Shown here: positions 14,501-50,323 of the stretch, piece by piece
Position numbering within the stretch: the stretch's first letter is position 1
How the letters are laid out: the number at the start of each line of letters is the position of its first letter
DNA from: Anaeramoeba ignava BMAN
Taxonomy: Eukaryota > Protista > Anaeramoebae
Assembly: GCA_028826165.1 (NCBI GenBank)
Contig: JAPDFW010000073.1
Span: 186,001-250,000, forward strand
Reading direction: 5' to 3'
Length of the DNA stretch: 64,000 nucleotides
Position numbers and translations under genes: made by a program
The notes under the pieces: model-generated
The model's input: only the letters and a program-made list of their open reading frames with translations
What the model was told of the DNA's origin: nothing
Database searches by the model: none

Positions 14501-17065
14501 ATGATTGCTCAAATTATCGTATTGTTGAAGTTTTAAATTTTCGAAGAAATTTTGCAAAAATTTTGTGAGGGATTTGTTATGAGAAAATCTTAAAGTCATG
14601 CTATTGAGTTCCTTTTTCCGAATTCTATTTATATCGTTAATAATCATTTGGGATAAAATTGGAACTGAAAAATTAACTTGTCCGCAAATCCATGAAAATG
14701 CGCGGTTTTTAATAGCATCAGAACAATTTACTTGTCGAGAGAATGGTAGATATGGATATCCTTGTTGAAGTAAATTCGAATGTAATTTAACAGATTTTGG
14801 AAAATATTTTGGGAGAGTAATTGATCCATAAACATCTTCCATTTTTGCAAGAAGATCTCCTATTGAAAATAGAGTCATAGGATTTAAAAAGGCGCCGTAT
14901 GGATTTGGTCTTGTGATTTTATCTATATCAGAAAGGTCTCCATCATCTTTTAAATTTTAATTTTATAAATGAATTTTAATTTTAATTTTATAAATGAATT
15001 TTAATTTTAATTTTATAAATGAATTTTAATTTTAATTTTAATTTTATAAATGAATTTTAATTTTAATTTTATAAATGAATTTTAATTTTAATTTTAATTT
15101 TATAAATGAATTTTAATTTTAATTTCATAAATGAATTTTAATTTTAATTTTAATTTTATAAATGAATTTTGATTTTAATTTTATAAATGAATTTTAATTT
15201 TAATTTTATAAATGAATTTTAATTTTATAAATGAATTTTAATTTTATAAATGAATTTTAATTTTATAAATGAATTTTAATTTTAATTTCATAAATGAATT
15301 TTAATTTTAATTTCATAAATGAATTTTAATTTTAATTTCATAAATGAATTTTAATTTTATAAATGAATTTTAATTTACAAAGTTGAAATCTTGATAAAGA
15401 CTCTGTTTTGGTTACTCTATTCTCTTCATCTAAAACATCTTCATAACATCTTCGACAAAGAAATCCACCAAAAGAAGAACGAAGAGTTCGAGAACTTTTA
15501 CAAAAATAACATTGATGTTTCTTTCTATATTCAAAAACTTTCCGATATGATCCAAATTTTTTGAATAGCCTTTCATTTGTAGCAATAGTGAATCTTGAAT
15601 TGCAAATTGATTTCCATAATAAATCATCATTTGCACATGATCTCCATTTTTGACAAGTTGCTGAACAATAAATTAATTTTCTTAAATCCAAATGTCGGAA
15701 AATAAGCACAAATATTTCTCCTGGAAAAATATCATCAGGAAAAGGTTGTGAAACATAATTTTGATATGCAATCACACGTTGCGCAAGTTCGCGCTTTGTT
15801 CCTATTAATGATTCCTTATGTTTCCAACACTGTTTGCGAATTTGTGATAAAGATTGTGTGTGAGTTGAAAGAATTTCACAAATTTCATTCTTGCGTAATG
15901 TTTGATATGGAAAATCGTAAAATTGGCAAATTGATTTGAGTTCTTTTACTGTGCTCTTCCCAATTTCTTTTGTTGTTAGAAATCGTGATCCAATTTGTGG
16001 AGAGTATTTGAAAGATTTTTTTTCAAAATATTCATATTCTTCATAACCTTGATTAGAAGTTTCAAAAAAATTTATTAGAAATCCTATCATTAATAATCTT
16101 TCAAAAATAGGAACTTCTTGATTTTGATTCCCTTTTCCTTTTCCTTTTCCTTTTCCTTTGCTTTTATTAGATTTTTCATTTGTATTTTCATTTGTATTTT
16201 CATTTGTATTTTCCTTTGTATTTTCCTTTTCTTCATCAACAAATAAATAATTATTTGAATAATCTAATGATAAAAACTTTAAACTTTCCAATTCCTTCTT
16301 GTTATTTGTTTTTCTCTTCTCTTCCTCTAATTGTTTGTAAATATCAATTTTATATCGTTGGCATATTTGCTTTAATTCCTCAGAATTCATTTTATTCATT
16401 TCATCAATTACTGCTTGAATCCAAATTTTTTCTTTTGAATCAATTCGAATCAATATGATAGATTTTTCACTTATAAATAAATCCAACAAACCAATTGCAT
16501 TTTGGGGTTTTAAAGGGTTTTTTGAATCAGTTTCTTCTTCATTTTTCTCACTCTGAACAATATTCAAAAAAATATCTTCTTGATTATCCTCTTGTTCTTT
16601 GTCTTCTAATGTAATTGAATTTTGTTGATTTTGATTTTTTGAATCACTTGAATCATTTGAATCATTTGAATCATTTGAATCATTTTGATTTTTTGAATCA
16701 TTTGAATCATTTTGATTTTTTGAATCATTTTGATTTTTTGAATAATTTTGATTTTTTGAATCATTTGAATCATTTGAATCATTTGAATCATTTGAATCAT
16801 TTGAATCATTTGAATCATTTGAATCACTTAAATCACTTAAATCGCTTGAATCACTTGATTCATCATAATGATGAAAACCATAACTATCAGAACTATCATC
16901 GCTATCAAAGAAACTGTGATATCTTCTATATCGAGAATACCGATGATATCTTGGAAATGCATCATATCTTCTTTCATCACTTTCTGAAGAATCTGAATCG
17001 CTTGAAGTTTTTGTTGAAGAATCTTCATCCATAAAAACATCTTTTTGTGTAACTGAAAAATTCAT
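11548..17065 (-). CDS. Large protein with SAP-like motifs, F-box, XPA-like C4 zinc finger and XPA_C-like domain, low-complexity tracts; exons 17065-15379 and 14946-11548, one extra base near 12540; ~1,690 aa if corrected
   Basis: F-box FPGEIFVLIFRHLDLRKLIYCSATCQKWRSCANDDLLWK; CYFC..CRRC; splicing intron 15378-14947 gives VTKTESLSRFQLYDGDLSDIDKITRPNPYGAFLNPMTLF..EDVYGS; total length minus 1 nt is divisible by 3. Confidence 0.75.
12340..12725. repeat. (AATCAA)n on the minus strand, coding a poly-NQ tract
   Basis: Direct reading; no GT donor at its start on the coding strand. Confidence 0.9.
14950..15375. repeat. AAAATT / AAAATTCATTTATA array in the F-box gene intron
   Basis: Direct reading. 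Confidence 0.9.
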
Positions 17066-17189
17066 TTGAAAAAAAATTAAAAAAAAATGAAAAAATGAAA
17101 AGAAAAAAAATGAAATTTTAAATTTGAAAAAAAAAATAAAATTAAAATTAAAAAAAAACTTTTTGGATTGATTTTTGTTCTCTTTTTCA

Positions 17190-17720
17190 AATAAATCTTC
17201 AAATAATTTTTTAAATAATTTTTCAAATAATTTTTAAATAATTTTTAAATAATTTTTAAATAATTTTTTAAATAATTTTTCAAATAATTTTTCAAATAAT
17301 TTTTTAAATAATTTCTTTAATAATTTTTCAAATAATTTTTTTAATAATTTCTCAAATAATTTTTCAAATAATTTTTTTAATAGATTTTTAAATAATTTTT
17401 CAAATAATTTTTTAAATAATTTTTCAAATAATTTTTAAATAATTTTTCAAATAATTTCTCAAATAATTTCTTTAATAATTTTTTTAATAGATTTTTAATA
17501 ATTTTTCAAATAATTTTTCAAATAATTTTTCAAATAATTTCTCAAATAATTTCTCAAATAATCTTCAAATAATTTTTTTAATAATTTTTTTAATAATTTT
17601 TCAAATAATTTTTTAAATAAATTTTTAAATAATTTTTTAAATAATTTTTAATAATTTTTCAAATAATTTTTTAAATAATTTTTAATAATTTTTCAAATAA
17701 TTTTTTAAATAAATTTTTCA
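17190..17720. repeat. Intergenic 12-13 bp array (AAATAATTTTTC)n
   Basis: Direct reading. Confidence 0.9.
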
Positions 17721-17757
17721 AATAAATCTTTTTTTTTGTTTGTTTTTTTGTTTGTTT

Positions 17758-20700
17758 TTAAATAGGAAGTATTTTAAAAGAAAGTTCCCACATTTCATCT
17801 TCAGTTGGAATTGGATCACGAACCAAAAAATTTTGAATAATATCAACTTTAACAAATTTATAACGAATTCCTTGAAATTCTTTAATTTTTTTAATAACAT
17901 TAAAAATTCTTCTTCTTTTAGCCCAATTAATTAAATTATTTTCAATACGACTAGGTAATTCTTCAATATTTGTAAGATCTGTAAGATACACACCAAGATA
18001 AGGAATTGCTGGAAGATTTGCATTTGCAAAAGCTTCTCTTAATTTTTTATATCCATTAATTGCATTTGTTAAATCATCAAGAATTTTGAATTGTTCAACA
18101 ACCTTTTTAGGAACAGCTTTCCATGTTTCTTCTAGTCTATCAACAGCTGAATTTTGCATTCCTGATACAAATGCCATTACATCATTGAAATTATTCATTT
18201 GATATAAACTTTCTGTTATTGAAACAAGTCGAATTATTTTTTTCACTCGCATTTTTTGTGATGTTTCTTTTAATATTTGAACAGAAACCCAATCTGCAAG
18301 ATCGTTAAATCTTGATATCATATTCATCACATTTGGACTTATTTCTCTTTTATTTCTTTTTGTCCATGAATTGTTGAGTAATTCTTTTGTGTGTATTCTC
18401 TGGAATAAATCATGTGTTGTTAAACATATTTGTCTTGCTAATTCAATATCTGATATTTGGAAAATATCCAAGTTTTGCAAGTCTTTTGATTTGGGCATTT
18501 TTGGTGATGGTATTATGTAATTTGGATTGAAAGTTACTCTTGTTTTCCCTCCGTTTTCTGCTCCATTTTTATTATTTTCTTTTGCTTTTTTTGATTTTTT
18601 AGGTGCACAACATCCTTGTGTTTCTGTATCTGTATCTATATATATTTCCAGTTCGGGTTCTATATTTGGTTTTGGTGTTTTTATTTGTGTTGGTGTTTCT
18701 TTTGGTTTGTTTTCGTTATCATCTTTTTTTGTTGTAATATCTTTGTTTTGTGGATTATTTTGTTGTGGTTCTGTTAGTTCTCCTCTCATTGCTTTTAATT
18801 CTTTTTGTATTGATTCAAAAGTCATCCAAACAGATCTTCTTCTGATTTGTTTTTTATCAGATAGCATATCAATTATTTCCTCTCCTTTTTTCTTGATTTG
18901 TGGATCTGAATGGATTACCAAACTATTTTGTGCAAAATTTTTGATCATTGATTTGATTTCTTGTGGAAGATGTTGTGGATTGAATTCAAGAATTCTGAAA
19001 ATCAAATCAACAACTGTAGTTTGTATTGTTTTTCTTTGTTCCAAATCAATTTCTGTTTTTGTAAATGGATGATGTGCTGGTACATTAAATCTAACCAGAA
19101 TTTTTTGCATAAATAAAACTTCATCTGTAATATTTGGAAGAAGTTCCAAAAATAAATCAATAAATGCTAATGAATATCCTTCTTGTGATGTTAATATTTC
19201 AATAGATTTATTCAAACTGGCTCCTCTTATTCTTTCATAAAGTAGTGCATTTTCAGCAACATTGTCATTGTTTTCCCAAACAATATTTGAAATTCCATAA
19301 GCAATTTCTTCCCACAAATCCATTGTATCACTAACTTTATCAATATTTTCTTGTCGAAAAACTGGATCCAATATATTTTGCATATCTTTATTATCTTTGG
19401 ATGATTCTCTTCTTGAATGCCGTCTAATTTCATTTGGTTTTTCAATATTTGTTTGTTGTGTATTTTGATCTTGTGTTTGATTTTCTAAATTTGTATTTTC
19501 ATTTGTATTTTCATTTATATTTGATTGAATATTTTCTATTTTATCATTTTCATTAATTTCAAGTTCAGATTCATCTTGAGCTTGATTTCCTTTATCAAAA
19601 TGAACTTCAACAGTTGGAATAATTTTTAAAACTGATCCTTTTTTAATTCCTTGGAAAGAAAACGCTAAATCTTCATCCAATTTAATTAAATCAGTGATTT
19701 GAGCATCTTTATGTTTTTTTTCATTTATATTTTCTTTTTGATTCAAATCAATTTCAAGATCTGATTCTTGATAAATAACATGATATAATACATAATTAAG
19801 ACCTTTTTTAAGTTGATAAATTCTTGAAAATTCATAAATGAAAACTTTCACATTAACAGTGAAATCGATAATAATTTCAACTTCTTCATCTGAAATTTTT
19901 TTATTAGTAATTTCATCATATCTTGGATAAATTAAATTAATTGTTGCAGGTCTTTGTTGGAATTTAATAAACATATATCCTGAAGTCTATTTAATTTTAT
20001 TTTAAATTTAATTTTAAATTTTATTATAAATTTTATTTTAAATTTTATTTTAAATTTAATTTTAAATTTTATTTTAAATTTTATTATAAATTTTATTATA
20101 AATTTTATTTTAAATTTTATTATAAATTTTATTATAAATTTTATTTTAAATTTTATTTTAAATTTTATTTTAAATTTTATTATAAATTTTATTTTAAATT
20201 TTATTTAAATTTTATTATAAATTTTATTTTAAATTTTATTTTAAATTTTATTTTAAATTTTATTTTAAATTTTATTATAAATTTTATTTTAAATTTTATT
20301 ATAAATTTTATTTTAAATTTAATTTTAAATTTTATTATAAATTTTATTATAAATTTAATTATAAATTTAATTTTAAATTTTATTATAAATTTTATTTTAA
20401 ATTTAATTATAAATTTTATTATAAATTTTATTATAAATTCTTACAAAATTTCGAGAAATATAAGCAGAAAGTTTTCTATTATTTCCTGGAATTACCCAAA
20501 TTCCAAATGCATTTTCACTATTTTTTGTTGGATATAACTTTCCAAAATGAAAATTATCATTAGTAGGAACAAAAGAAACTTGATGAGCTTCAACAGAAGA
20601 TTCAACTCCACTTGTTACTGTTGATTCAAGAAAATGTGAATTATCTCTTGGTAACTTAAGTAATAATCCATATTCTTCTTTTGGAACATTCAATTCAGCA

Positions 20701-24274: not shown

Positions 24275-27200
24275 ATGAATTTCCTCAATTTTTTACCTTT
24301 ATTTTTGTTTCTTTTCTCCTTTTCTTTGAATTCAAGAACAACTGGAATCAATTATTTTTATACTTATCAACAACATAACCCTTTATTTGTTGATGTTCAA
24401 TTTTCAAATGGTTCAATTGATAGCATCGATTTGGGTAACACCAATAGTTGGTATTTTATTAGCGATTCAACAACTCATACTGGTATTTAATTATAAATTT
24501 AATTATAAATATAAATATAAATATAAATTTAATTATAAATATAAATATAAATTTAATTATAAATATAATTATAAATTTAATTATAAATTTAATTATAAAT
24601 ATAATTATAAATTTAATTATAAATTTAATTATAAATTTAAATATAAATATAATTATAAATTTAATTATAAATTTAATTATAAATTTAATTATAAATATAA
24701 TTATAAATTTAATTATAAATTTAATTATAAATTTAATTATAAAATTTAAATATAAATATAATTATAAATTTAAATATAAATTTAATTATAAAATATAATT
24801 ATAAATTTAATTATAAATTTAATTATAAATATAATTATAAATTTAATTATAAAATATAATTATAAATTTAATTATAAATTTAATTATAAATATAATTATA
24901 AATTTAATTATAAATTTAATTATAAATTTAATTATAAATTTAATTATAAATTTAATTATAAATTTCATTATAAATTTAATTATAAATTTAATTATAAATT
25001 TAATTATAAATATAATTATAAATTTAATTATAAATATAATTATAAATTTTATTATAAATTTTATTATAAATTTAATTATAAATTTAATTATAAATTTAAT
25101 TATAAATTTATTATAAATATAATTATAAATTTAATTATAAATTTAATTATAAATTTAATTATAAATTTAATTATAAATTTAATTATAAATTTAATTATAA
25201 ATTTAATTATAAATTTAATTATAAATTTAATTATAAATATAATTATAAATATATTATAAATAATTATATAATTATAAAATATAATTATAAATATAATTAT
25301 AAATTTAAATATAAATATAATTATAAATTTAATTATAAATTTAATTATAAATTTAATTATAAATTTAATTATAAATATAATTATAAATTTAATTATAAAA
25401 TATAATTATAAATTTAATTATAAATATAATTATATAAATTTAATTATAAATATAATTATAAATATAATTATAAAATTTAATTATAAATTTAATTATAAAA
25501 TTAATTATAAATTTAATTATAAATTTAATTATAAATTTAATTATAAATTTAATTATAAATTTAATTATAAATTTAATTATAAATTTAATTATAAATTTAA
25601 TTATAAATTTAATTATAAATTAATTATAAATTTAATTATAAATTTAATTATAAATTTAATTTAAATTTTATAAATATAATTATAAAATTTAATTATAAAT
25701 TTTAATTTATAAATTTAATTATAAATTTAAATATAAATATAATTATAAATTTAATTATAAATTTAATTATAAATATAAATTTAAATTATAAATTTAATTA
25801 TAAATTTAAATATAAATTTAAATATAAATTTAATTATAAATTTAATTATAAATTTTATTATAAATTTAATTATAAATTTAATTATAATTTAATTATAAAT
25901 ATAATTATAAATTTAATTATAAATTTAATTATAAATTTAATTATAAATATAATTATAAATATAATTATAAATTTAATTATAAATATAATTATAAATTTAA
26001 TTTATAAAATATAATTATAAATTTAATTATAAATATAATTATAAATTTAATTATAAATATAATTATAAATTTAATTATAAATATAATTATAAATTTAATT
26101 ATAAATTTAATTATAAATATAATTATAAATATAATTATAAATTTAATTATAAATATAATTATAAATTTAATTTAATTATAAATTTAATTATAAATTTATT
26201 ATAAATTTAATTATAAATTTAATTATAAATATAATTATAAATTTAATTATAAATTTAATTATAAATTTAATTATAAATTTAATTATAAATTTAATTATAA
26301 ATTTAATTATAAATTTAATTATAAATTTTAATTATAAATTTAATTATAAATTTAATTATAAATTTAATTATAAATTTAATTATAAATTTAATTATAAATT
26401 TAATTATAAATTTAATTATAAATTTAATTATAAATTTAAATATAAATATAATTATAAATTTAATTATAAATTTAATTATAAAATATAAATTTAATTATAA
26501 ATTTAATTATAAATTTTTATTATAGATTTAATTATAAATTTAATTATAAATATAATTATAAATTTAATTATAAATTTAATTATAAATATAATTATAAATT
26601 TAATTATAAATTTAATTATAAATTTAATTATAAATTTAATTATAAATTTAATTATAAATTTAATTATAAATTTAATTATAAATATAATTATAAATTTAAT
26701 TATAAATTTAATTATAAATTTTATTATAAATATAATTATAAATATAATTATAAATTTAATTATAAATTTAATTATAAATTTAATTATAAATATAATTATA
26801 AATTTAATTATAAATATAATTATAAATTTAATTATAAATATAATTATAAATTTAATTATAAATTTAATTATAAATTTAATTATAAATTTAATTATAAATT
26901 TAATTATAAATTTAATTATAAATTTAATTATAAATTTAATTATAAATTTAATTATAAATTTAATTATAAATATAATTATAAATTTAATTATAAATATAAT
27001 TATAAATTTAATTATAAATTTTATTATAAATTTAATTATAAATTTTATTATAAATTTTATTATAAATTTAATTATAAATATAATTATAAATTTAATTATA
27101 AATTTAATTATAAATTTTATTATAAATTTAATTATAAATTTTATTATAAATTTAATTATAAATTTAATTATAAATATAAATTTAATTTATTTAATAAAAT

Positions 27201-30200
27201 AAGGGGTTGACTGCACCACTAGACTTTCTGATACAATACCAGTAAATTTCTTCCTTGATTCTCCTGAATATACAACAGAAATGTGGTTTTCAAATCTTAG
27301 TGCTGGATCCAACTACATTTTAATGAACATGGTAGACACATATTCTAATAAACCGCTAATTATGGCGCTCAGTAATACAGAATTAAAAATAGTATGCTCA
27401 TCCGGTTCGGCTACTATTACTATTGATGGCTTGAATGGTAGTACTCCACTTCATTTACTTATAGTTTGGACCTCAGTAAATCAAGACATTTATGTGAATG
27501 GAGTTTATAATACATCAACAAGTTTGAATTGTGGAACACAGACTGCTATGATTGATCCTCTGCAAGAAATACATAAAGTGTATTTTATGGGTGTATATAA
27601 TAAAGCATTAAACCCAACCGAAATTGGTAATAATTTTGAAGTTGGATTGCCTTCATGGTATGACTCCTCAAATGATACTATTCAATTAAACGATAGTATG
27701 ACCTATGAAGTTAATTTTCTCGATTATCTTACACTCAATAATCTTACTTTCAACAACATGGAAATTTTGGGAGTTGATACAGACACACCAGGATCTAATT
27801 GCACACTTTACCAAATAAACCCACCTGAAAAGATGATTAATTTTCCATTTACTCTTGCTAATAGTATATCAAGCATTGAGATTCAAACACCAGTCAAACC
27901 TTCAGGTCCTGTTATGTGCAATATTTCTTACCGAATGAACTTTACTGATAATAATTTCGGATCAGTTTTCCAGTCGAATATTTCAGTTAATGTTAATGTA
28001 TCAATTACAACCATTGGGCCGTGGTTTGAGACATATATTACTTCTCAAATGTCGACAGTTGCATCTGCCGTTTTAACAATGGAATATGTGGATGATTTAG
28101 GCCAAACCGTTACAAATTTCACTGTGACAGGGTTGTCTTCGGGAACTTTGTATTACAACAACGTTACTATTTCAAATGGAGTTCCCGTAACGATTGTATC
28201 GCCAGCTCAGAATGGAACGCTTGAACTTGGATATAAAATGTCAACATCGAATAATGGCAATACAACTTCAATTGAGACATTCAATTTTGAATTGAATTCA
28301 ACAAGCGGATTATCGAATCAGGATACGGTTGATATAGCACTTAATAACACCAATCTTTACATGAACAAAACAACAAACAATTTGACTGAAGATAATTCTA
28401 CGAATGTTGATTTCTCATTTTTCGATTCAGTCGCAGGAACTGTTTCAAGTTCTTGGTCAGCATACTGGAGTGGACCATGCGATGGATCAACAATTATGGT
28501 GGGACAAAACACTGTCAGTTGTCCAGGTGTGTTGACAAGTCAAACTTCCGTTATGGAAGATTCGAATCCTCTTACCGTATCAATTAAACCTCCTCAATAT
28601 AAGAACGGACTTATGAATCTTACATTTAGTTTGACAAATGGACTTATATCTCGCACTGGGATCAATTTAGAATTCTATATCGAACCTGTTTTTAATCAGG
28701 CAACAATTTCCGCAACATGTTCGAATAATTGCAAAACTCAAGGAAACATGCTTCTTTACACGGCAACAAATTTCACGATTGATTTCACAATTTTCGATCC
28801 CGATGAATACAATTTGAAGTTGGACTTAAGTTTACTCAATTTCGAGATGGAGGCTGCCAATGTTTCAGGACAAATCGGGCAAATAATGGGGTCAAAATCC
28901 CAGATTATGACTCAATTATCGGGGTTCAAAATCATAACTACAGGATCAAGTGTAGTTGGGAATACGGATTTATTAACCTTGAACATCTCGAAGTTGGACA
29001 ATCCAGCAAATACTTATTCTATTAAATATCAGATTCAAGTTCCAACAGAAACATCATCCGACAACAGCAACAATACAATCCCAATTGCAGTTGGTGCTGG
29101 TGCAGGAGGGTTAATCTTAATAATAATTGTAATCATTCTGATTGTCAAACGAAAGCATCGCAGACCCAAGCCACCACCACCACCAGATTTCGCACCATAC
29201 ATCTACGGAAGCCTTCTTGAAATCTCTCTTTCGGATCAAAAGAAACAGATTGAGAAAATCAAAGATCTCAAACCACTTCTTGTTTCTGAGCAACTGACTC
29301 TTGTCAAGGCAATTTTCAACATCACAAACCCATCCGAAAGTGATTCTGTATGTCGCGCGCTTGTATATTTGTTCGAGAGAGACTCTCTTCTTATGAAACT
29401 CCTGAAGAAACGAATCAAGGACGAAATCCGCGAGACACAAGAAGAAGGAACACTTTTCCGTTCAAACAGCTTAGCAAGCAAGATGATGAAGACATACTCA
29501 CAACTTGTTGGATTACCGTATTTGTACGACACTTTGGTCATCGAAATTTTCGATATTTGCAAGTCTTTATTTCAGCACGATGTTGAGGTTGATCCCAACC
29601 GCATTGAGGAGGATCAAGAAAGTGATGTCGATATCAACAGGTGGTTCCTTCTCGCTTCAGCACAACAAATTTTCTCACGCATCATCAAATCCGGAAATGA
29701 AACTCCCGATCCGTTCAAGTTCATTTGCTTCTATCTTCGAAAGCATGTTGTCAAGAAATACCCAGATAGCAAGTATACTGCTATTGGTGGTTTTATTTTC
29801 TTGAGAGTTTTCTGTCCTGCTATTACAACTCCTGAGATTTTCGGTCTTGTTAAGGAACAACCTAGTGATTCTGCTAGAAGACATCTTGTTCTTGTTGCCA
29901 AATCTCTTCAAAATGTTGCTAATGGAACTAATTTTAAAGAAGGAACTATGGAAGAGTTATCTGTTTTTGTTAAATCCAATACACCAAAAGCTTATAAAGT
30001 AATTAAATTAAAATTAAAATTCATTTATAAAATTCATTTATAAAATTTATTTATAAAATTCATTTATAAAATTTATTTATAAAATTCATTTATAAAATTT
30101 ATTTATAAAATTCATTTATAAAATTTATTTATAAAATTCATTTATAAAATTTATTTATAAAATTCATTTATAAAATTTATTTATAAAATTCATTTATAAA

Positions 30201-30978
30201 ATTTATTTATAAAATTAAAATTAAAATTATTTATAAAATTAAAATTAAAATTATTTTAAATTAAAATTAAAATTAAAATTAAAATTAAAATTAAAATCAA
30301 AATTAAAATTAAAATCAAAATTAAATTTAAAATTTATTTATAAAATTAAAATTAAAATTATTTATAAAATTAAAATTTATTTTGAATTAAAATTGAAATT
30401 AAAATCAAAATTAAAATTAAAATTATTTATAAAATCAAAATTAAAATTAAAATTAAAATTAAAATTAAAATCAAAATTAAAATCAAAATTAAAATTAAAA
30501 TCAAAATTAAAATTAAAATCAAAATTAAAATCAAAATTAATTTATAAAATTAAAATTATTTATAAAATTAAAATTAAAATTAAAATTTATTTTGAATTAA
30601 AATTTATTTATAAAATTAAAATTAATTTATTTAAAATTAAAATTAAAATCAAATTTAAAATTAAAATCAAAATTATTTATAAAATTAAAATCAAAATTAA
30701 AATTTATTTTAAATTTATTTTAAATTTATTTATAAAATTAGTTCTTTGATGAAATTGCTGATAGAGGTGAAAAAGTTGATAATATCTCAAATATTGAAAT
30801 TCCTGACCATATTTGTGATGTTTCACTTGCAGTTCTTCACAGATTTATTGTTCAAAACAGAGAAAAACTTATCAATGAATTAAACAAAACAGAAGAAGGA
30901 AAAGAAATTTCAAAAAGACTTGAAGCAATGTTGGACCAAATTGGTGAACCAATTCCTAAAAAAGTTACTCACATTTAA
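24275..30978 (+). CDS. Single-pass transmembrane receptor-type RasGAP (signal peptide, LamG-like and Ig/cadherin-like ectodomain, TM, NF1-like GAP); exons 24275-24482, 27204-29998, 30742-30978; ~1,079 aa
   Basis: Signal peptide MNFLNFLPLFLFLFSFSLNS; many NxS/T sequons; TM IAVGAGAGGLILIIIVIILIV then KRKHRR; arginine finger TLFRSNSLASK; GGFIFLRVFCPAI; VAKSLQNVAN. Confidence 0.92.
24486..27190. repeat. 12-bp tandem array (AATTATAAATTT)n filling the 2.7-kb intron 24483-27203
   Basis: Direct reading. Confidence 0.95.
30002..30740. repeat. AAAATT(C/T)ATTTAT and AAAATT/AAAATC arrays in intron 29999-30741
   Basis: Direct reading. Confidence 0.9.
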
Positions 30979-31207
30979 TTTTTCAAACTTGATTTTTTTT
31001 ACTTTCTTTTTTACTTTTTTTTTCTTTGACTTTCCACAACAAAATTGTGTTTTTTTTTTCTTGAACTTTTTTTGAACTTTTTTTGAACTTTTTTTCTTTT
31101 GCTCTTTTTAGCTATTTTTCTATCCCAATTAAAAAGCAAATTTAAAAAATTCATTTTTTTCATTTTTTTCTTTTAAAAAATCAATTTAAAAAATTCAATT
31201 TAAAAAA

Positions 31208-33575
31208 ATGGAAAAATTTAAAGCTTCAATGCTTCTTGGTGGAGTTGGAGATTCAATGGGATATCATGATAAAGAATATGAATTTCAATATTGTGGAAAA
31301 TTAATTCATGAAGATGTTAATAAAATTACAAACGGAAAAGGCATTTCTGCACTTCATTTAAAAGGTTCAAGTTGGAAAGTTTCTGATGATACAGTTATGA
31401 TGATTGCAACTGCTGAATCTTTACTTGATTCTGTTGAAAAAGGTTTTTTAGTTGTTGATCCTCAAAATCCAAAAATTGATTTGCCTAAAGTCATGGGTAT
31501 TTTTGCAAGAAAGTATGTTGATTGCATGAATGATATGGATAATCGAATGCCTGGTAATAAAATAATATATATATATAAATATATAAATATAATTTTTAAT
31601 TTGTTTTTTTTCTTAGGTGCTTCTGTAACTGGTGCTCTTTTAAAAATAAAAGATAATCCAGAAGAAAAATGGAATTCAACTCCTTTTAGAACTTTAGGTG
31701 GTGGTTGTGGTGCTGCGTAAAAATCAAAATCAAAATCAAAATCAAAATCAAAATTAAAATTAAAATCAAAATCAAAATCAAAATCAAAATCAAAATCAAA
31801 ATTAAAAATCAAAATCAAAATCAAAATCAAAATCAAAATTAAAAATCAAAATCAAAATCAAAATCAAAATCAAAATTAAAATTAAATTTAAAATTAAAAT
31901 TAAAATCAAAATCAAAATCAAAAATCAAAATTAAAATCAAAATTAAAATTAAAATTAAAATTAAAATTAAAATTAAAATTAAAATTAAAATTAAAATAAA
32001 ATCAAAATTAAAATCAAAATCAAAAATCAAAATCAAAATCAAAATTAAAATCAAAATCAAAATCAAAATCAAAATTAAAATCAAAATTAAAATCAAAATT
32101 AAAAATCAAAATCAAAATTAAAATTAAAATTAAAATTAAAATCAAAATCAAAATTATTAAAATTAAAATTAAAATTAAAATCAAAATAAAAATTAAAATA
32201 AAAATTAAAATTAAAATTAAAATTAAAATTCAAAATTAAAATCAAAATTAAAATCAAAATTAAAATCAAAATTAAAATTAAAACCAAAATCAAAATTAAA
32301 ATCAAAATCAAAATTAAAATCAAAATCAAAATCAAAATTAAAATTAAAATCAAAATCAAAATTAAAATCAAAATTAAAATCAAAAATTAAAATTAAAAAT
32401 CAAAATCAAAATCAAAATCAAAATTAAAATTTAAATTAAAATTAAAATCAAAATCAAAATTAAAATCAAAATAAAAATCAAAATAAAAATCAAAATTAAA
32501 ATTAAAATTAAAATTAAAATTAAAATCAAAATTAAAATCAAAATTAAAATCAAAATTAAAATCAAAATTAAAATCAAAATTAAAATCAAAATCAAAATCA
32601 AAATTAAAATTAAAATTAAAATTAAAATTAAAATTAAAATTAAAATTAAAATCAAAATTAAAATTAAAATCAAAATTAAAATCAAAATCAAAATTTAAAA
32701 ATCAAAATCAAAATCAAAATTAAAATTAAAATCAAATTCAAAATTAAAATTAAAATTTAAAATCAAAATCAAAATCATTTTAGAATGAGATCAATGCCAA
32801 TTGGATTATTATTTCATGATTATGAAAATCCACAAATATTAGATCTATTAATAAGCGTATCTATTGAATCAGGAAGAATCACACATCATCATCCTGTTGG
32901 ATATTTAGGAGGTTTAGTTTCTGCATTATATATTTCATTTGCTTTACATAATTTACCTATTGTTGAATGGGGAAAAAAATTATTACAAATTATTAAAGAA
33001 AAAGTTCCAGATTATTTAGAAAAGGCTCAAAGATTTGCAAAAGAAAATATTGATGCTGTTAGTACTTTTATTGATCATTGGGAAAAATATTTAAAACTTC
33101 GGCAAATTTTTGGAACTGATCAAAATGTTCCAATTTTTCCTGATGTTTATGATATTCAAGAAAGAGATGATTTTTATAAGTCTATTTCCTTTAAAGGATG
33201 GGGTAATTTTTATTTTAAAATTAAAATTAAATTCATTTATAAAATCAAAATCAAAATCAAAATCCAAATTAAATTCATTTATAAAATTAAAATTAAAATT
33301 AAAAAGGTGGAAGTTCTGGTCATGATAGTGTTATAATTGCTTATGATGCTCTTTTAGGTTCAAAAGTAAATTGGGAAGAATTATGTCTTAGAGGTGTTTT
33401 ACATGGAGGAGATTCTGATTCAACTGGAGTAATTGCTTGTTCAACTTATGGAGCATTAAAAGGATTTAAAGAAGTTCCTGAATTAAATTATAAAGATTTA
33501 GAATATCATGACAGACTTATTGATTTAGGAGAAAAACTTTTTAAAATTTCAAATTACGAAGAAAAACAAAAATAA
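31208..33575 (+). CDS. ADPRH: ADP-ribosylarginine hydrolase (ARH1-type); exons 31208-31553, 31617-31716, 32784-33202, 33307-33575; ~377 aa
   Basis: [60 protein letters not shown]. Confidence 0.93.
31720..32778. repeat. (AAAATC/AAAATT)n hexamer array in ADPRH intron 2 (31717-32783)
   Basis: Direct reading. Confidence 0.95.
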
Positions 33576-33751
33576 ATTATTAAATCTTTTTCATTTCATT
33601 TCATGTTTTTGTTTTTAATTTTGATTTGAATTTTGATTTAAATTTTAATTTGAATTTTTGATTTGATTTTTGTTTTTGATTTGATTTTTTTTTATTGATT
33701 GGGAAAATTGTTTTGGAAATTGAAAAAGAAAAATTCAAATCAAAATTAAAC

Positions 33752-34845
33752 TTAGAAAAGAACCAAAAAAACGAACAAAGAAATCAAAAAAGAAGAAAAT
33801 GAAAGAAGATAAGGAGAAGCAGAAAGACCTGAATAAGGGATTTCAATAGAAACTTGACCATTTTCTGAATGATAATTAGTTGCACCAACACTACTTTCAA
33901 GATGATAAAAAAGAGTAATTGTAGTTTGTTGAGAACCTTTAACAGTAACAAGAATAGTATTAACAGGCAAAACAGATCCTCCAGAAATTTGATTATTATT
34001 AGTATCATAAAAAGTAGCTCCAGCTGCAGAACTAATTCCATTGATATGAACATAATAATCATCAGAAATTGATTGACTTGAACAATCGATTGAGAATGTT
34101 TTTGATTGACCAGGATATGCTATTACTGATTGTGAATTACTGACTTGGAGGAAGTTTTTGAGAATAATTGTTTGTGTGCAATCACTTGAATCAACAGCTC
34201 CATCATTTGTAACTTTGAAAGATAAAGTAGTTTGCACTTGTGATGTGTGATCCAGCATTGATCCATAAGAATAAATGACACTCCAAGTATTGGATGTTCT
34301 GTAATCAACTGTTGTATCATTTGCGTTAATTAATGAACCTTGAGCTCCGCTTGAAAGTATTTGATAAATTGATCCTGTTGATGGAATTATGTTGATTGTT
34401 GATGAACTAAGAAGTGAATCTGGATCATCACCAACTAATGCTACTTGGCAAACAGCATCAGTATCATAACAAGTTGTTGTTAATGATTGGCATGTTGGAT
34501 TTGCGGGTGTGTTTGTTGCAGTGATGTTTATTGAACTTGTTTGTGGATATGTATATAAGTTTCTGGTTGTATCAAATAGTGTAAATTCCCATGATGAGGC
34601 TGTGTATGATTGCAAATTGGGCACTCCTTCATAGTAGAATTCAGTTGTTAAGTTTACTGATAATTGTTGTCCAACATATAGCATATCTCCTTTTACTCCT
34701 CCGTTAGATGTGTATAATCTTCCATAAATTGGTTCAAATAATCCAGTAGTTGTTAATGTGAATTCATCATTTGTTGGATCTCTGTAAGCATTCAAAGTGA
34801 TAATATCTAAATTAAATTCAAACAAATTTATTATATTTTAAATAT

Positions 34846-34908
<63 letters not shown>

Positions 34909-34950
34909 TATTTTAAATATTTATATTTATTATATTTATATTTATTATAT

Positions 34951-34985
<35 letters not shown>

Positions 34986-35804
34986 TATTTATATTTATAT
35001 TTATATTTATATTTATATTTATTTATTTATTTTATTTTATTTATTTATTTATTTTTTATAGATGAATATTTATATTTACATTTATAGTTTATATTTTATT
35101 TTTATATTTATTTTTATATTTTATATTTATATTTACATTTATTTTTTATTTATTTATTTTATTTATTTATTTATGATTTATTTGTTTATTTTATTTTTAT
35201 TCCCAATTCCATTTTTTAGCATTTTGTTTTTCCATTTTTGTTATTTTATGTTTTATATTTATTTACACAAATTTGTTTATTTTTTTATTTATTTTCTGAT
35301 TTATTTATTTTTTTTATTTATTTGTTTTTATTTAATTTATTTATTTATTTATTTTATTTTATTTGTTTTTATTTTATTTATTTTATTTATTTTTATTTTA
35401 TTTTATTTTTTTTTTTTAAAAATATTTTTTGTTTATTTTATATTTTATATTTATGTTTTTTATTTTTTTTTATATATTATATTTTATATTTTATTTATAT
35501 TTAAAATTTATATTTTTTTTTTTTATATTTATTTATTTTTATTTAAATTATTTATATTTTGTTTATTTTTATATTTATATTTTTTTATTTATATTTATTT
35601 TTATTTAATTTTTTTTATTTATTTATTTTATTTATTTTTATTTATTTTTATTTATTTTATTTATTTGTTTAAAATTATTATTTGTTTTTTTTAATTTATT
35701 TATTTGTTTTTATTTATTTATTTTAATTTTTTATATTTTTTTTTATTTATTTTATTTATTTTATTTATTTATTTTTTATTTTTTTATTTATTTATTTTAT
35801 TAAT

Positions 35805-35840
<36 letters not shown>

Positions 35841-36847
35841 ATTTAATTTAATTTTATTTATTTATTTTTTATTTTTTATTTATTTTTATTTAAATTTAAT
35901 TTATTTATTTATTTATATATTTATATTTTATTTATATTTATTTATTTATATTTATTTATATTTATATTTTTATATTTATATTTATATTTATATTTATATT
36001 TATTTATTTATTTATTTTATATTTATTTATTTATTTATATTTTAAATATTTATTTTGTGTAAATTTTTATCAAAAATATACCACTCAAGTTAAATACTTG
36101 ATCAGTTCCACCAGACAATTGAGTAGGAACACAATTTGGACGAGCATATGGAATACTAGCATTAAAATGTTCTTCGATCTCAGTTGGAGAAAGCATAGAT
36201 GAATAAGTAGCAATATACATTACATTTGAATTAATCTTAAAAGCAGAATTTTGGTCACTACCGCTTCTCAAAGTGAAAAATTCAGAATATGAAACAGGTT
36301 CAGAATAAATGAAGGAACCGTTATAATAAAAAGAAACATTCTCTGATTTGTTATAAGTAATGACTAAATGATTAAGAGACCCAGTTGTTATAGGAAAATC
36401 AATTGATTGGGTATCAAAAGTATATGAATACAAATAAAGATTAAAAAAGGAAGAATTTATTTTGGAAATGAGGAAAAAAAACTCAGCAGTGCCAGATTTA
36501 AGCCCAAATATAGCATTTGTAGGTAAATCAGGCTCCATAAACCAGATCTCAACCGATGCTTCGGGTGTAAATTGTCCAGATGGAACTCCGCAATTTTGAG
36601 TCCAGTCACACAAATTGGAACCCACTATTCCAGTTGATTTTTGTGATGCTGTTGCGTTAACTCCAACTGTGTAATATGTCGGATAAAGCCATGTTCCTGT
36701 TAAACCCGTGAAATTAAATAGCATGTCTGTTGATGATGATATGTCTCCTGTTGCTTCTTGAAATTTAAACTCAAGATCTGGTGTTGTTTGCGTTATTATC
36801 TTTCCAATAACCAATAAAAACAAAAGTGTTTTTATTAATTGATTCAT
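33752..36847 (-). CDS. Secreted, probably GPI-anchored surface protein with LamG-like and Ig/cadherin-like domains; exons 36847-36082, 34806-33752; ~606 aa
   Basis: Signal peptide; SVEIWF..NHLVITY..FYYNG..IATYSSMLSPTEI LamG-like pattern; C-terminal SGLSAS followed by a hydrophobic tail ending at the stop. Confidence 0.85.
34830..36060. repeat. Degenerate (TTTA)n/(TTTATA)n low-complexity intron fill (intron 34807-36081)
   Basis: Direct reading. Confidence 0.85.
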
Positions 36848-46251: not shown

Positions 46252-49013
46252 ATGAAAAATAACTCAAACAAAAAAAAAACTAGCTCAGAAGGATCAACTA
46301 CAACTGAATACCCAACAAATTCAGAAACAACTTCAACTTCCACTTCATCAACTTCTGACTCTGAAATTAATATCGAACAAAATCAACATTTTTTCCCCGA
46401 ATTCAACACAAAATTAAATCTTCCCAAAAAAAAAAATCGCAAAAAACCAAAAAAAAGATACACAAAAAAACAAATCAACTTATACAATTTATCAAAAAAC
46501 ACAATCAAAGAATTATTAATTACAGATGTTGCAAATGATATTGAATCCATTTATGAAAACCAAAAAGAAAGCGCAGATTTAAAGATTTTTTGTGGAAATT
46601 TTGAAAATCCAATTCATTGTCATCGCCTCATTTTAATTTCTCGTTGCGCATTTTTTCATGCTCAATACAGAGAATCAAAATCTGAATGCAACATATATTT
46701 ACCTGATTTTGATGTTTCTGTTGTGGAACCAATTATCCGATTCATTTACTCTGGAAAAATTACAATTAATTTTCAAGAATTCGGGAAATTTTATAAATTA
46801 GCTAAATTTTTTTCACTTAAAAAACTCCAAATTCTCATTGAAAAAGAAATCGAACCCATAATCACTTACAGAAACGCAATATCGTTATATATGGAAAGTC
46901 GGGAAATTGAATCTTTTTATCTCATCAGAAAATGTGAAATCTTTATCATAAATAACATGTCAATTCTCATCAAAAAAAAGAAAACCGATAAATTATCCGA
47001 AAACCAGTTGCTTTCCTTAATAGAACTCATTGTATCCAAAAAAGACATCAATAACAAAACCTATCTCATTCCAGTCATACTTGACAACTGGATTGAAAAG
47101 AACACTTTATTAGTCGAAAAGCTTAATGAAAATACTAGCATCAATTATCGTGATCCGATAGAGTCTCAAAAACAGCATATCAAGGAATTCATTTTGCAAA
47201 TGCTTATCCAATCAAGAGATTTGCAAGAAATTCCTGATTCCAAAATTGCCCAAATTGAAAAAATCCAAAGAATTTCTTCTTTTCCGTTAAATTTTGTTTT
47301 CCAGATAATAAATCTTCAAATGAAATCTCTTAAAGAAAAAATCAGTCAGGAACATGAGCTTCAAAATCAAAAATTTCATATTATCGAAGAAAAGGAAAAG
47401 TATTTTGCAAAAAAAGAAGATGAATTCCGTGAAAAAGAAAGAGTTTTCCAAAGAAAAAAAGATAATTTAGAAGAATTAGCCAAAGAAATTGAAGCCAAAA
47501 TATCACCTAATCAATTGAAAGATGGATCAATTCAACAAACAGAGTCTCAAGTTTATGAAATTTTGCAAATTTTCAAAAAAAGTATTGAGAAGGAAATGAT
47601 TGGTAATTAATCAAAATCAAAATCAAAATCAAAATTATAATTAAAATTAAAATTAAAATATTTTTATTTATATTTTTAAATTCAGATCAAGTATCAATTG
47701 ATAGTGTTCTTAATTTCATGAAGAAATTCCCTTTAGCGAGCGATATTCAAGAAATTTCTTGTTTCATTTTAGAGAAAATTGCTGAAGAAGATGCTGGTAA
47801 GAATATTTAAATTCAAAATGATTCAAAATTTAAAAAATTTTTGGATTTTTCATATTTTAATTTAGATGATTTGATCAAAATTGTTGATTCAGATGGAATG
47901 GATTTGGTAATTGATTCTATGAATAACTTTCCAAATGATCCAAAAATACAAGAAGTAGCAATTGATGCAATCATCACTTTTCTAAGAAAACCTAAAAGAA
48001 AAAGTGAACATTTTATTTATCATATTTAATATTCATTTAAAATTAATTCAATATTTATTCTTTCAAAATGAATTAAATTAGAATATCAAAAGAAAATTAA
48101 AGAAATAAAAGGAATTGAAGCAATTATTAAAGCAATGAATAATTTCCCAACAAATAAAAAAATACAATGGAAAGGTTGTTGGGGATGTAGAAATATTGCA
48201 GTTGGAAATTTTGGTATCAATCAAATATTAAATATTATTTTTATTTATTATTTTTATTTATTATTTATTATAGATAATGTAGAAGAAATTAAAATTGTAA
48301 ACGGAATTCAATCAATCACAAAAGCAATGTCAAATTTCCCCAAAAGTAAAAAAGTTCAATGGAAAGCTTGTTGGGCTTTATGGGATATTGCCAATACAAA
48401 TGATGGTAGAAATATTTTCAATTTCAAATTCATTTCCAAATTCAAATTCAATTTAAAATTAAAATTAAAATTATAATAATAATTTATTAGAAAATCGAAT
48501 TGAGATTAAAAATGCAAATGGAATTGATTTGATTCTTAAAGCAATGGCTAATTTTTCTGATATTTCAATTGTTCAAAAACAAGCATGTGGATCTTTAATG
48601 AATATTGCTAAAAATGATGGTAAAATTCAAATTAAAAATTCTTTTTGGATTGTTTATTAATTTATCTAAAAAAAAAAGATAATAAAAAGCGAATTAGAGA
48701 ATTAAAAGGAATTGAATTGATTATTCAAGCAATGCAAAAATTTTCTGAAAGTCAAGCAATTCAATTTAGAGGTTTTTGGACTTTGTTAAATCTTTCTAAA
48801 AGAAATTTAGGTAAAAAATTTTCAAAAACAAAAAAAGAAATTAAAAAATCAAGAAATTAAATTTTTTTTCTTTTTCTTTTTAATAAAGAAAATCAACAAG
48901 AAATAAAAAAGTATGGAATATTAGAGTTAGCAAATCAAGCAAAAAAGAATTTTCCAAAAGATGAACAAATTAAAGCAAAAATTACAAAATTTTTAGGATT
49001 ATTACAAATTTAA
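46252..49013 (+). CDS. BTB/POZ, coiled-coil and ARM-repeat protein; 8 exons (46252-47602, 47686-47796, 47866-48003, 48082-48213, 48274-48405, 48491-48619, 48679-48810, 48889-49013); ~749 aa
   Basis: BTB ADLKIFC..HCHRLILISRCAFF..IIRFIYSG; repeats GIE.I.KAM.NFP....Q..GCW...NIA; total 2250 nt in frame. Confidence 0.9.
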
Positions 49014-49059
49014 ATGAAATTTTTTTTTAATAAAAAAAAAGAGAAAAATCTAAACAATA

Positions 49060-50200
49060 AATTAATCATAAACTAATTATATTTTTATTTAGAATAAAAT
49101 AGATATTATATATTTAATTTCTAAATTAATTAATTAATTATTTATATTTAATCTATTATTAATTTGAATTGAAAATATTTAATTAAAAAATTAAAAATTT
49201 AAATAATAAATTAATAATAATTTATTTATATTTTTATTTAAAATAAGAGAAAAAGCAAATATTTTAATAAATTTGCTTTTTAAATAATTTAATTAATTGT
49301 TAAGATTTGATCTATTATTAATTTGGAATTGAAAATATTTAATTAAAAAATATAAAAATTTAAATAATAATTTAACAATAATTTATTTATATTTTTATTT
49401 AAAATAAAATAGATATTAAATATCTTATTTTTAAATAAATTAATTATTTATTTAGATTTGATCTATTATTAATTTGAAATTGAAAATATTTAATTAAAAA
49501 TATAAAAATTTAAATAATAAATTTAACAATAATTTATTTATATTTTTATTTAGAATAAAATAAATATTAAATATCTTATTTTTAAATAAATTAATTAATT
49601 GTTTATATTTGATCTATTATTAATTTGAAATTGAAAATATTTAATTAAAAAAATATATAAAATTTAAATAATAATTTAATAATAATTTATTTATATTTTT
49701 ATTTAGAATAAAATAAATATTAAATATTTTATTAAATTTGCTTTTTAAATAATTTAATTATTTGTTTATATTTGATCTATTATTAATTTGGAATTGAAAA
49801 TATTTAATTAAAAAAATATATAAATTTAAATAATAAATTAATAATAATTTATTTATATTTTTATTTAAAATAAGAAAAAAGCAAATATTTTAATAAACTT
49901 GCTTTTTTAAATAATTTAATTATTTGTTTATATTTGATCTATTATTAATTTGGAATGTTAAATATTTAATTAAAAAAATATATAAATTTAAATAATAATT
50001 TAATAATAATTTAATTATATTTTTATTTAAAATAAAATAAATATTAAATATCTTATTTTTAAATAAATTAATTAATTGTTTAGATTTGATCTATTATTAA
50101 TTTAGAATTGAAAATATTTAATTAAAAAATATATAAATTTAAATAATAATTTAATAATAATTTATTTATATTTTTATTTAAAATAAAATAAATATTAAAT
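49060..50200. repeat. ~150-163 bp tandem repeat, ~7 copies
   Basis: Anchor GATCTATTATTAATTT at ~49150, 49309, 49460, 49611, 49774, 49936, 50088. Confidence 0.88.
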
Positions 50201-50323
50201 TCCTTTTTTAATTGAAAAGAAAACAAAGGGAAAAAAAATTTATTTTTTCAAATTCATTTTTTTTTTCTTTTAAAAAAATAAAAATAAAAAGAAAAAAAAG
50301 CAAAAAAATTTAATATAAAAATA

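Follow-up and report, generated by a model that had tools for sequence, protein, structure and literature searches.

The window analysed here, a stretch of 64,000 nucleotides from Anaeramoeba ignava (contig C74, positions 186001-250000), contains a receptor gene with a cytoplasmic RasGAP domain (R) and, on the opposite strand, a neighbouring gene whose product appears to carry a glycosylphosphatidylinositol (GPI)-type signal (N). The question raised by this locus is whether the two genes encode partners in one surface-recognition system, as the original prediction had proposed on the view that N is a paralog of the R ectodomain. We found this paired-recognition reading to be partly supported, and we assign a rough probability of 45% to the proposal that N and R are the two linked genes of a surface-recognition module derived from one LamG-encoding ancestor, in which N would be a ligand or co-receptor of R and a contact between the two LamG domains would regulate the fused RasGAP. 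The part of the prediction that stood was carried by a specific kinship of the LamG domains, by the recurrent co-location of the genes and by a hypervariability confined to LamG, in two genes that are both expressed.

Architecture and kinship of the two proteins

The DNA of the window is extremely AT-rich, and the gene models were assembled by hand from open reading frames and GT..AG splice sites. The R model (plus strand, 24275-24482 / 27204-29998 / 30742-30978; 1079 residues in total) was identical to database protein P0002, annotated as 'ras gtpase-activating protein', and the N model (minus strand, 36847-36082 / 34806-33752; 606 residues in total) was identical to P0003 (KAJ5073664.1, hypothetical protein). 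The EukProt transcriptome set contains P0002 itself together with two close variants of N, P0001 and P0004; therefore, both genes are expressed and spliced as modelled, and R and N are genuine genes of A. ignava. The features of the two genes, and of the gene that lies between them, are as follows.

24275-24482, plus strand: R exon 1, signal peptide and first LamG strands with the VDVQF motif; phase 1 end at a GT donor; corresponds to P0002 residues 1-69
24483-27203, plus strand: R intron 1, a tandem repeat of 2.7 kb with a guanine-plus-cytosine (GC) content of about 0%
27204-27665, plus strand: LamG part of R exon 2, from EMWF to GLPSW; Laminin_G_3 at 22.2 bits, sub-threshold
27666-29077, plus strand: N/S/T-rich extracellular stalk in R exon 2, without a Pfam family; contains all single-nucleotide polymorphisms (SNPs) seen in public contigs
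29078-29146, plus strand: R transmembrane segment
29147-29998, plus strand: R cytoplasmic RasGAP domain; PF00616 at 109.6 bits, with the TLFRSN arginine-finger region and the FLR..CPA motif
30742-30978, plus strand: R exon 3, C-terminal end of the RasGAP region and stop codon
36082-36847, minus strand: N exon 1, signal peptide (36788-36847) and Laminin_G_3 domain; 36.3 bits, cut-off 27.6
36566-36778, minus strand: N-terminal part of the N LamG region, residues ~24-94; scattered differences in variant P0004
36356-36520, minus strand: N hypervariable segment, residues ~110-164; differs between the genome and transcriptome variants and is the most variable block of the C101 paralogs
36233-36295, minus strand: N hypervariable segment, residues ~185-205
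34807-36081, minus strand: N intron, an AT-only repeat of 1.3 kb
33752-34806, minus strand: N exon 2, stalk with a sub-threshold SibA-like immunoglobulin (Ig) match, hydrophobic GPI-type tail (~33755-33820) and stop codon
31208 to ~33575, plus strand: ADP-ribosylglycohydrolase (ADPRH) gene between R and N, with at least three exons

From its N-terminus, R begins with a signal peptide and a LamG-type domain encoded partly by exon 1 and partly by exon 2; an N/S/T-rich stalk of ~470 residues, a transmembrane segment and a RasGAP domain follow. The RasGAP domain scored above the Pfam threshold (PF00616, 109.6 bits), and the motifs TLFRSN and FIFLRVFCPA were present in the translation. Judged from these features, R is predicted to be a type I membrane protein with a catalytically plausible RasGAP domain. 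Laminin_G_3 (PF13385) was the best Pfam family of every R lineage in hmmscan, with sub-threshold scores of 19.7-23.4 bits; the window R scored 22.2 bits (E 1.7e-4) against a cut-off of 27.6, and one R copy on a second contig, C101, reached 28.0 bits in the genome scan.

In N, the signal peptide precedes a Laminin_G_3 domain that passes the Pfam gathering threshold (36.3 and 35.8 bits versus 27.6), and a stalk of 350 residues leads to a hydrophobic C-terminus. In particular, the small residues SGLSAS are followed by a hydrophobic end of 20 residues without cytosolic residues, and the C101 paralogs and the A. flamelloides protein P0009 have kept this tail. This agreed with the earlier description of N as ending in a GPI-like signal rather than in the transmembrane segment and RasGAP of R. 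The genome encodes components of the GPI machinery (PIG-T, 227.8 bits; PIG-A, 144.7 bits; GAA1, 218.2 bits), and GPI anchoring is therefore feasible. N is probably GPI-anchored, judging from its C-terminus; alternatively, the hydrophobic end may be a tail-anchor.

A first AlphaFold2 model of the N LamG domain, built on a 7-sequence alignment, was poor (pLDDT 50) and was superseded by a model of the region built on a 37-sequence alignment, which showed a predicted jelly-roll with a pTM of 0.70 and a core pLDDT of 70-95. Foldseek matched this model in the PDB to the lectin-like jelly-roll subdomain of clostridial neurotoxin binding domains (E ~4e-9, TMq 0.42-0.48), which, as far as the model can be read, is a generic ConA-like fold and nothing more. 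A sequence search of the PDB with the N profile gave no match. With N above the threshold, R having its best match below it and the predicted fold being a jelly-roll, the two domains resemble the Laminin_G_3/Concanavalin A-like lectin superfamily (PF13385), but they differ from it in forming a small subfamily of their own with hypervariable segments.

To the eye, the original prediction had found the two proteins alignable. The peptides quoted for this alignment were all present in the frames given for them, and the N-terminal D(V/L)xF motif was found as DLEFKF in N and as VDVQF in R, where it lies in the upstream exon 24275-24482, outside the interval (27204-36847) originally delimited. BLASTP aligned N with R over 25 residues only, the last of the LamG domain (E 0.005); the best non-family matches of N were R members, and vice versa. 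When the two families were compared by hhalign, 73 columns were aligned with a probability of 74% and an E value of 2.8e-5. The hidden Markov model (HMM) of the N family scored all four R lineages at 21-25 bits versus at most 10.6 bits for 20 other LamG_3 domains of the genome, and the R-family HMM scored the window N at 27 bits versus at most 10.7 bits for the same 20 domains. Among these 20 of the at least 49 LamG_3 domains in the genome, the LamG domains of N and R are thus each other's nearest relatives. The prediction had conceded that a similarity no greater than that between random LamG proteins would count against it; the observed similarity was greater (21-27 bits versus at most 10.7 bits).

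Beyond the LamG domain, the kinship was not recovered. Homology of the stalks was rejected, as hhalign of the N stalk with the R ectodomain gave a probability of 0.1%, and the T/S/N-rich repeats that both proteins were said to continue into had no detectable homology. The proposed paralogy therefore held for the LamG domain of ~200 residues, by the family HMMs, and failed for the stalks. A scan of the whole genome with the N-family HMM gave no match other than N at E values up to 1, although its initial filter may hide weak matches, since the local HMMs did detect R. Word-indexed protein searches were run with N exon 2, with the R ectodomain and with the R-family alignment, and each recovered nothing beyond the protein of the query itself; these searches also missed known paralogs and were hence uninformative.

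HMMER was used to search 1.84 billion representatives, among which N was found in A. ignava only, apart from a weak match to P0009 of A. flamelloides (E 4e-4). Marginal matches aside, N and R appear to constitute a small LamG subfamily restricted to Anaeramoeba among these representatives. P0009 (779 residues; JAOAOG010000098.1:966743-969243) has the layout of N, with a signal peptide, an 'LCDW..C' motif, a LamG domain, a stalk and a hydrophobic tail, and its gene is single-copy within 22 kb.

Linkage, copy history and variation

The N family was found at two loci only, the window and C101, the latter with six intact or near-intact copies and one decayed fragment. The R-ectodomain family was found on C74, on C101 (four copies), on C120 (a contig-end copy nearly identical to those of C101), on C58 and on C56 (two copies). 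On C101, four head-to-tail pairs, each with N followed by R, recur with a period of ~16.5 kb and are followed by two shorter units that lack an R segment. The paired linkage that had been anticipated for other family members thus recurred in these four pairs. At each of the two N loci, N has R-type genes no more than 5 kb away; the gene orders differ, and no ADPRH gene is present on C101. The original prediction had named a large, scattered family as a reason to expect adjacency by chance; Laminin_G_3 is such a family in this genome, with at least 49 matches. Fusion of N and R into one gene on C101 was rejected, as every R copy has its own signal-peptide exon. Where the C101 array begins (C101:3312-4456), an N-type pseudogene is decayed and interrupted by many stop codons.

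In the maximum-likelihood tree of the R ectodomain, C101 was sister to C56 (support 99/97), with C74 and C58 outside that pair. Therefore, the two N-linked R lineages span the deepest split of the tree, and the linkage is old. The divergence between C74 and C101 was about equal for both genes (31-42% identity). The simplest history is an ancestral N-R pair, probably born by tandem duplication, followed by a block duplication, by R-only partial copies (C58 and C56) and by tandem amplification on C101. The adjacency is thus old and recurrent, yet it represents approximately one independent event and not five.

This history also serves an explanation without any functional link, in which a gene bearing a LamG exon was duplicated in tandem and later copied as a block, and in which patchy variation reflects gene conversion among array copies together with relaxed constraint on exposed loops. 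One block duplication accounts for both linked loci, and at the DNA level the C101 units share 87-97% identity, also outside coding sequence. We consider this explanation improbable on the pattern of variation described below.

The gene that truly fits the description 'GPI-type paralog of the receptor ectodomain' is a different one, located at C58:292232-294034. It reproduces the R ectodomain in full (35% identity over ~600 residues), with a hydrophobic GPI-type tail in place of the transmembrane segment and RasGAP, and judging from its sequence it is a candidate decoy form of the receptor. Two further GAP-less R copies, one of them broken, are present on C56.

The variation among copies was concentrated in the LamG domains. 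The C101 R copies are ~99% identical over 773 codons except in LamG, where 27 of 150 columns are variable, versus 10 of 623 elsewhere (p 5e-13). The ratio of non-synonymous to synonymous differences (pN/pS), calculated by NG86 and rough in a genome this AT-rich, was 1.5-1.7 in the R LamG domain versus 0.23-0.30 in the stalk. Among the six C101 N copies, the LamG pN/pS was 1.6-1.7, with variable columns at 58 of 210 positions in LamG versus 27 of 350 in exon 2. Upon joint alignment, the variable columns of the C101 N copies, the C101 R copies and the window N variants fell into the same four LamG segments, in which synonymous divergence was likewise raised. The combination points to segmental exchange together with diversifying selection, because the nearest neighbours of the copies shift from segment to segment in a mosaic pattern and 342 of 630 informative site pairs fail the four-gamete test.

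The window N gene showed the same localised variation. It was found in three forms, the genomic P0003 and the transcriptomic P0001 and P0004, which are either alleles or unassembled copies; these forms differ at 57 of 226 columns of the LamG region versus 4 of 361 elsewhere (p 2e-21). The strong recombination signal among the array copies is what gene conversion would leave, and to that extent it favours an explanation without a functional link. Relaxed constraint, in contrast, does not readily account for pN/pS values that exceed 1 in LamG only, in genes whose stalk is under purifying selection and whose frames are intact over 773 codons. Nor does conversion within an array account for the single-copy window N, which has no array partner above 41% identity.

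The proposed recognition module and its alternatives

In the proposed module, the LamG (ConA-like jelly-roll) tip of R would be carried on a long glycosylated stalk, followed by the transmembrane segment and RasGAP, and N would present a sister LamG tip on an unrelated stalk that ends in a GPI-type signal. The variable N tip would engage the R tip on an opposing cell (in trans) or, as a co-receptor, on the same cell (in cis). This engagement would cluster or release the RasGAP and locally switch Ras-family signalling, which in turn could control decisions on adhesion, engulfment or fusion. Diversifying selection and segmental exchange would keep the tips variable, so that the module could act as a barcode. 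A complex prediction for the LamG domains of R and N scored 0.02 against a mark of 0.34, which gave no answer and is evidence neither way.

Several observations weigh against this module. The part common to N and R is the LamG domain only and not the whole ectodomain. The adjacency of the genes could be mere inheritance from their tandem birth and one block duplication, and the roughness of the pN/pS ratios tempers the argument from selection. No R-like gene was found within 10 kb of the P0009 gene of A. flamelloides, and two of the C101 units contain N without R. Among the C101 R copies, copies 1, 2 and 4 (15348-17831, 31705-34215 and 64458-66956; an intact frame of 773 codons) lack the second half of the RasGAP through a deletion of ~1.2 kb relative to unit 3, and copy 3 (48272-51562) retains the full GAP but has a frameshift in the ectodomain; the C120 copy (167508-169372) has a frameshift near the transmembrane segment. 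These truncations and frameshifts may be real or may be long-read errors; taken at face value, several C101 R copies appear damaged, which would suit genes without a functional link. Pairwise distances of N and R among the four C101 pairs were not correlated (r -0.19), in a comparison of six values without statistical power. Binding of N to R, the direction of signalling and the biological role are all inferred.

The variation at the window locus is a further point of this kind. Variation of the window R gene was read from the contigs of two public runs (Logan), which cover exon 2 and can miss rare alleles; no LamG variants of R were found in these contigs. Four SNPs were present, all in the stalk (28030, 28164, 28173 and 28262; E345E, V390A, S393L and T423P in P0002 numbering), one synonymous and three missense. 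The A. ignava material therefore contains at least two R haplotypes that are identical in LamG. At the window locus, only N looks polymorphic.

An invariant receptor tip beside a variable partner would suit a system in which the LamG tips of N and R each bind variable external ligands, for example glycans on the surface of pathogens, prey bacteria or Desulfobacter-like symbionts. N would then be a GPI-anchored co-receptor, an opsonin-like sensor or a decoy, and not the ligand of R; an arms race or a broad spectrum of ligands would underlie the hypervariability and the tandem amplification, much as in arrays of innate immune receptors. We regard such a microbe-directed repertoire as the main rival of the module, though less likely than not. 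The presence of several specificities in one genome (6-7 N and 4-5 R) suits a repertoire, and the N-only units together with the GPI-tailed or GAP-less R ectodomain copies on C58 and C56 suit decoys or soluble sensors. The genome contains at least 49 Laminin_G_3 matches, mostly in giant surface-type open reading frames, and more than 100 matches to the RasGAP domain, many inside open frames of 1000-2400 residues, which argues that surface sensing as a whole has expanded. The cytoplasmic domains closest to R (46-51% identity) are in frames of 1000-1560 residues on C59, C8, C143, C81 and C13; no Laminin_G_3 match was found nearby, and these frames are therefore receptor-RasGAPs with other ectodomains. 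A. ignava also lives with surface-connected bacterial symbionts (PMC11550330). However, no microbial ligand is known, and a microbe-directed repertoire alone leaves unexplained why N and R are adjacent across the deepest split of both families, with differing gene order, and why their LamG domains are mutually closest and vary in the same segments.

To place the proposed module of N and R among known systems, we compared it with other receptor-partner pairs. The Tgr proteins of Dictyostelium are built of IPT/TIG Ig-like domains. TgrB1 and TgrC1 are related polymorphic surface proteins, a receptor and its ligand, encoded by adjacent genes at a duplicating and recombining locus, and their pathway is genetically tied to the small-GTPase GAP RapGAPB (PMC12142906, PMC12745789). 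N and R resemble this pair in their tight linkage, with 2.8 kb between the genes in the window and four pairs on C101. In contrast, both Tgr proteins are transmembrane proteins without a known fused GAP or LamG domain, and their binding and function are proven, whereas the candidate N-R pair has the GAP within the receptor, a GPI-type partner and a window R without visible polymorphism.

The plexin receptor contains a cytoplasmic Ras-family GAP domain (PMC3166162), and in semaphorin-plexin signalling the ligand and receptor share a kind of N-terminal domain, with some of the ligands GPI-anchored (PMC4181631). N and R are similar to this system in the receptor with a cytoplasmic Ras-family GAP, the common tip domain and the GPI-type partner. 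They differ in that the common domain is a LamG jelly-roll and in that the N-R genes are linked and hypervariable, while semaphorins and plexins are neither. No Sema, PSI or IPT domain was matched in N or R (Pfam, E up to 1), and membership of the semaphorin or plexin families, for which a Sema domain would be required, was rejected. TgrB1-TgrC1 and semaphorin-plexin may be taken as the closest analogues of the N-R pair, by analogy only. The pairs GFRalpha/RET and CD14/TLR4 also combine a GPI-anchored co-receptor with a signalling receptor; as proposed for N and R, an anchored partner that cannot itself signal accompanies a transmembrane receptor that does. Those partners, however, are not known to be paralogous to the receptor tip, gene-linked or hypervariable.

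Slime moulds, colonial animals, plants and fungi rely on linked, polymorphic receptor-partner pairs to tell self from non-self, and to our knowledge no such pair is known from the Anaeramoeba/metamonad branch. A bolder form of the module, which we put forward as doubtful, is a LamG-based counterpart of semaphorin-plexin that would also serve as a self/non-self barcode. In a metamonad-related amoeba, a hypervariable GPI-anchored LamG ligand and a likewise hypervariable LamG receptor with a fused RasGAP would be co-inherited as a cassette, with the four LamG segments shuffled, and would discriminate kin or the cell's own membrane before adhesion, fusion or engulfment. If this is true, paired allorecognition would have arisen independently in a lineage outside Amoebozoa, animals, fungi and plants. 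With its own RasGAP, the receptor would couple recognition straight to a small-GTPase switch and so offer a compact route, accessible to experiment, from the cell surface to cytoskeletal decisions. If microbes are the ligands, the host, a protist with surface-connected bacterial symbionts, would possess in these genes an innate-immune-like repertoire of variable receptors. Under either reading, the four hypervariable LamG segments mark out a candidate binding surface open to experiment.

The intervening gene and the introns

The two window genes converge, with the ADPRH gene (31208 to ~33575) alone between them, as had been described. ADPRH is probably outside the system, because it is absent between N and R on C101. 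GC content in the window was 30-40% in exons and 0-10% in introns and spacers. Introns composed almost entirely of A/T tandem repeats, 0.7-2.7 kb in length and with 0-10% GC, interrupt otherwise ordinary genes at 24483-27203, 29999-30741, 31800-32780 and 34807-36081.

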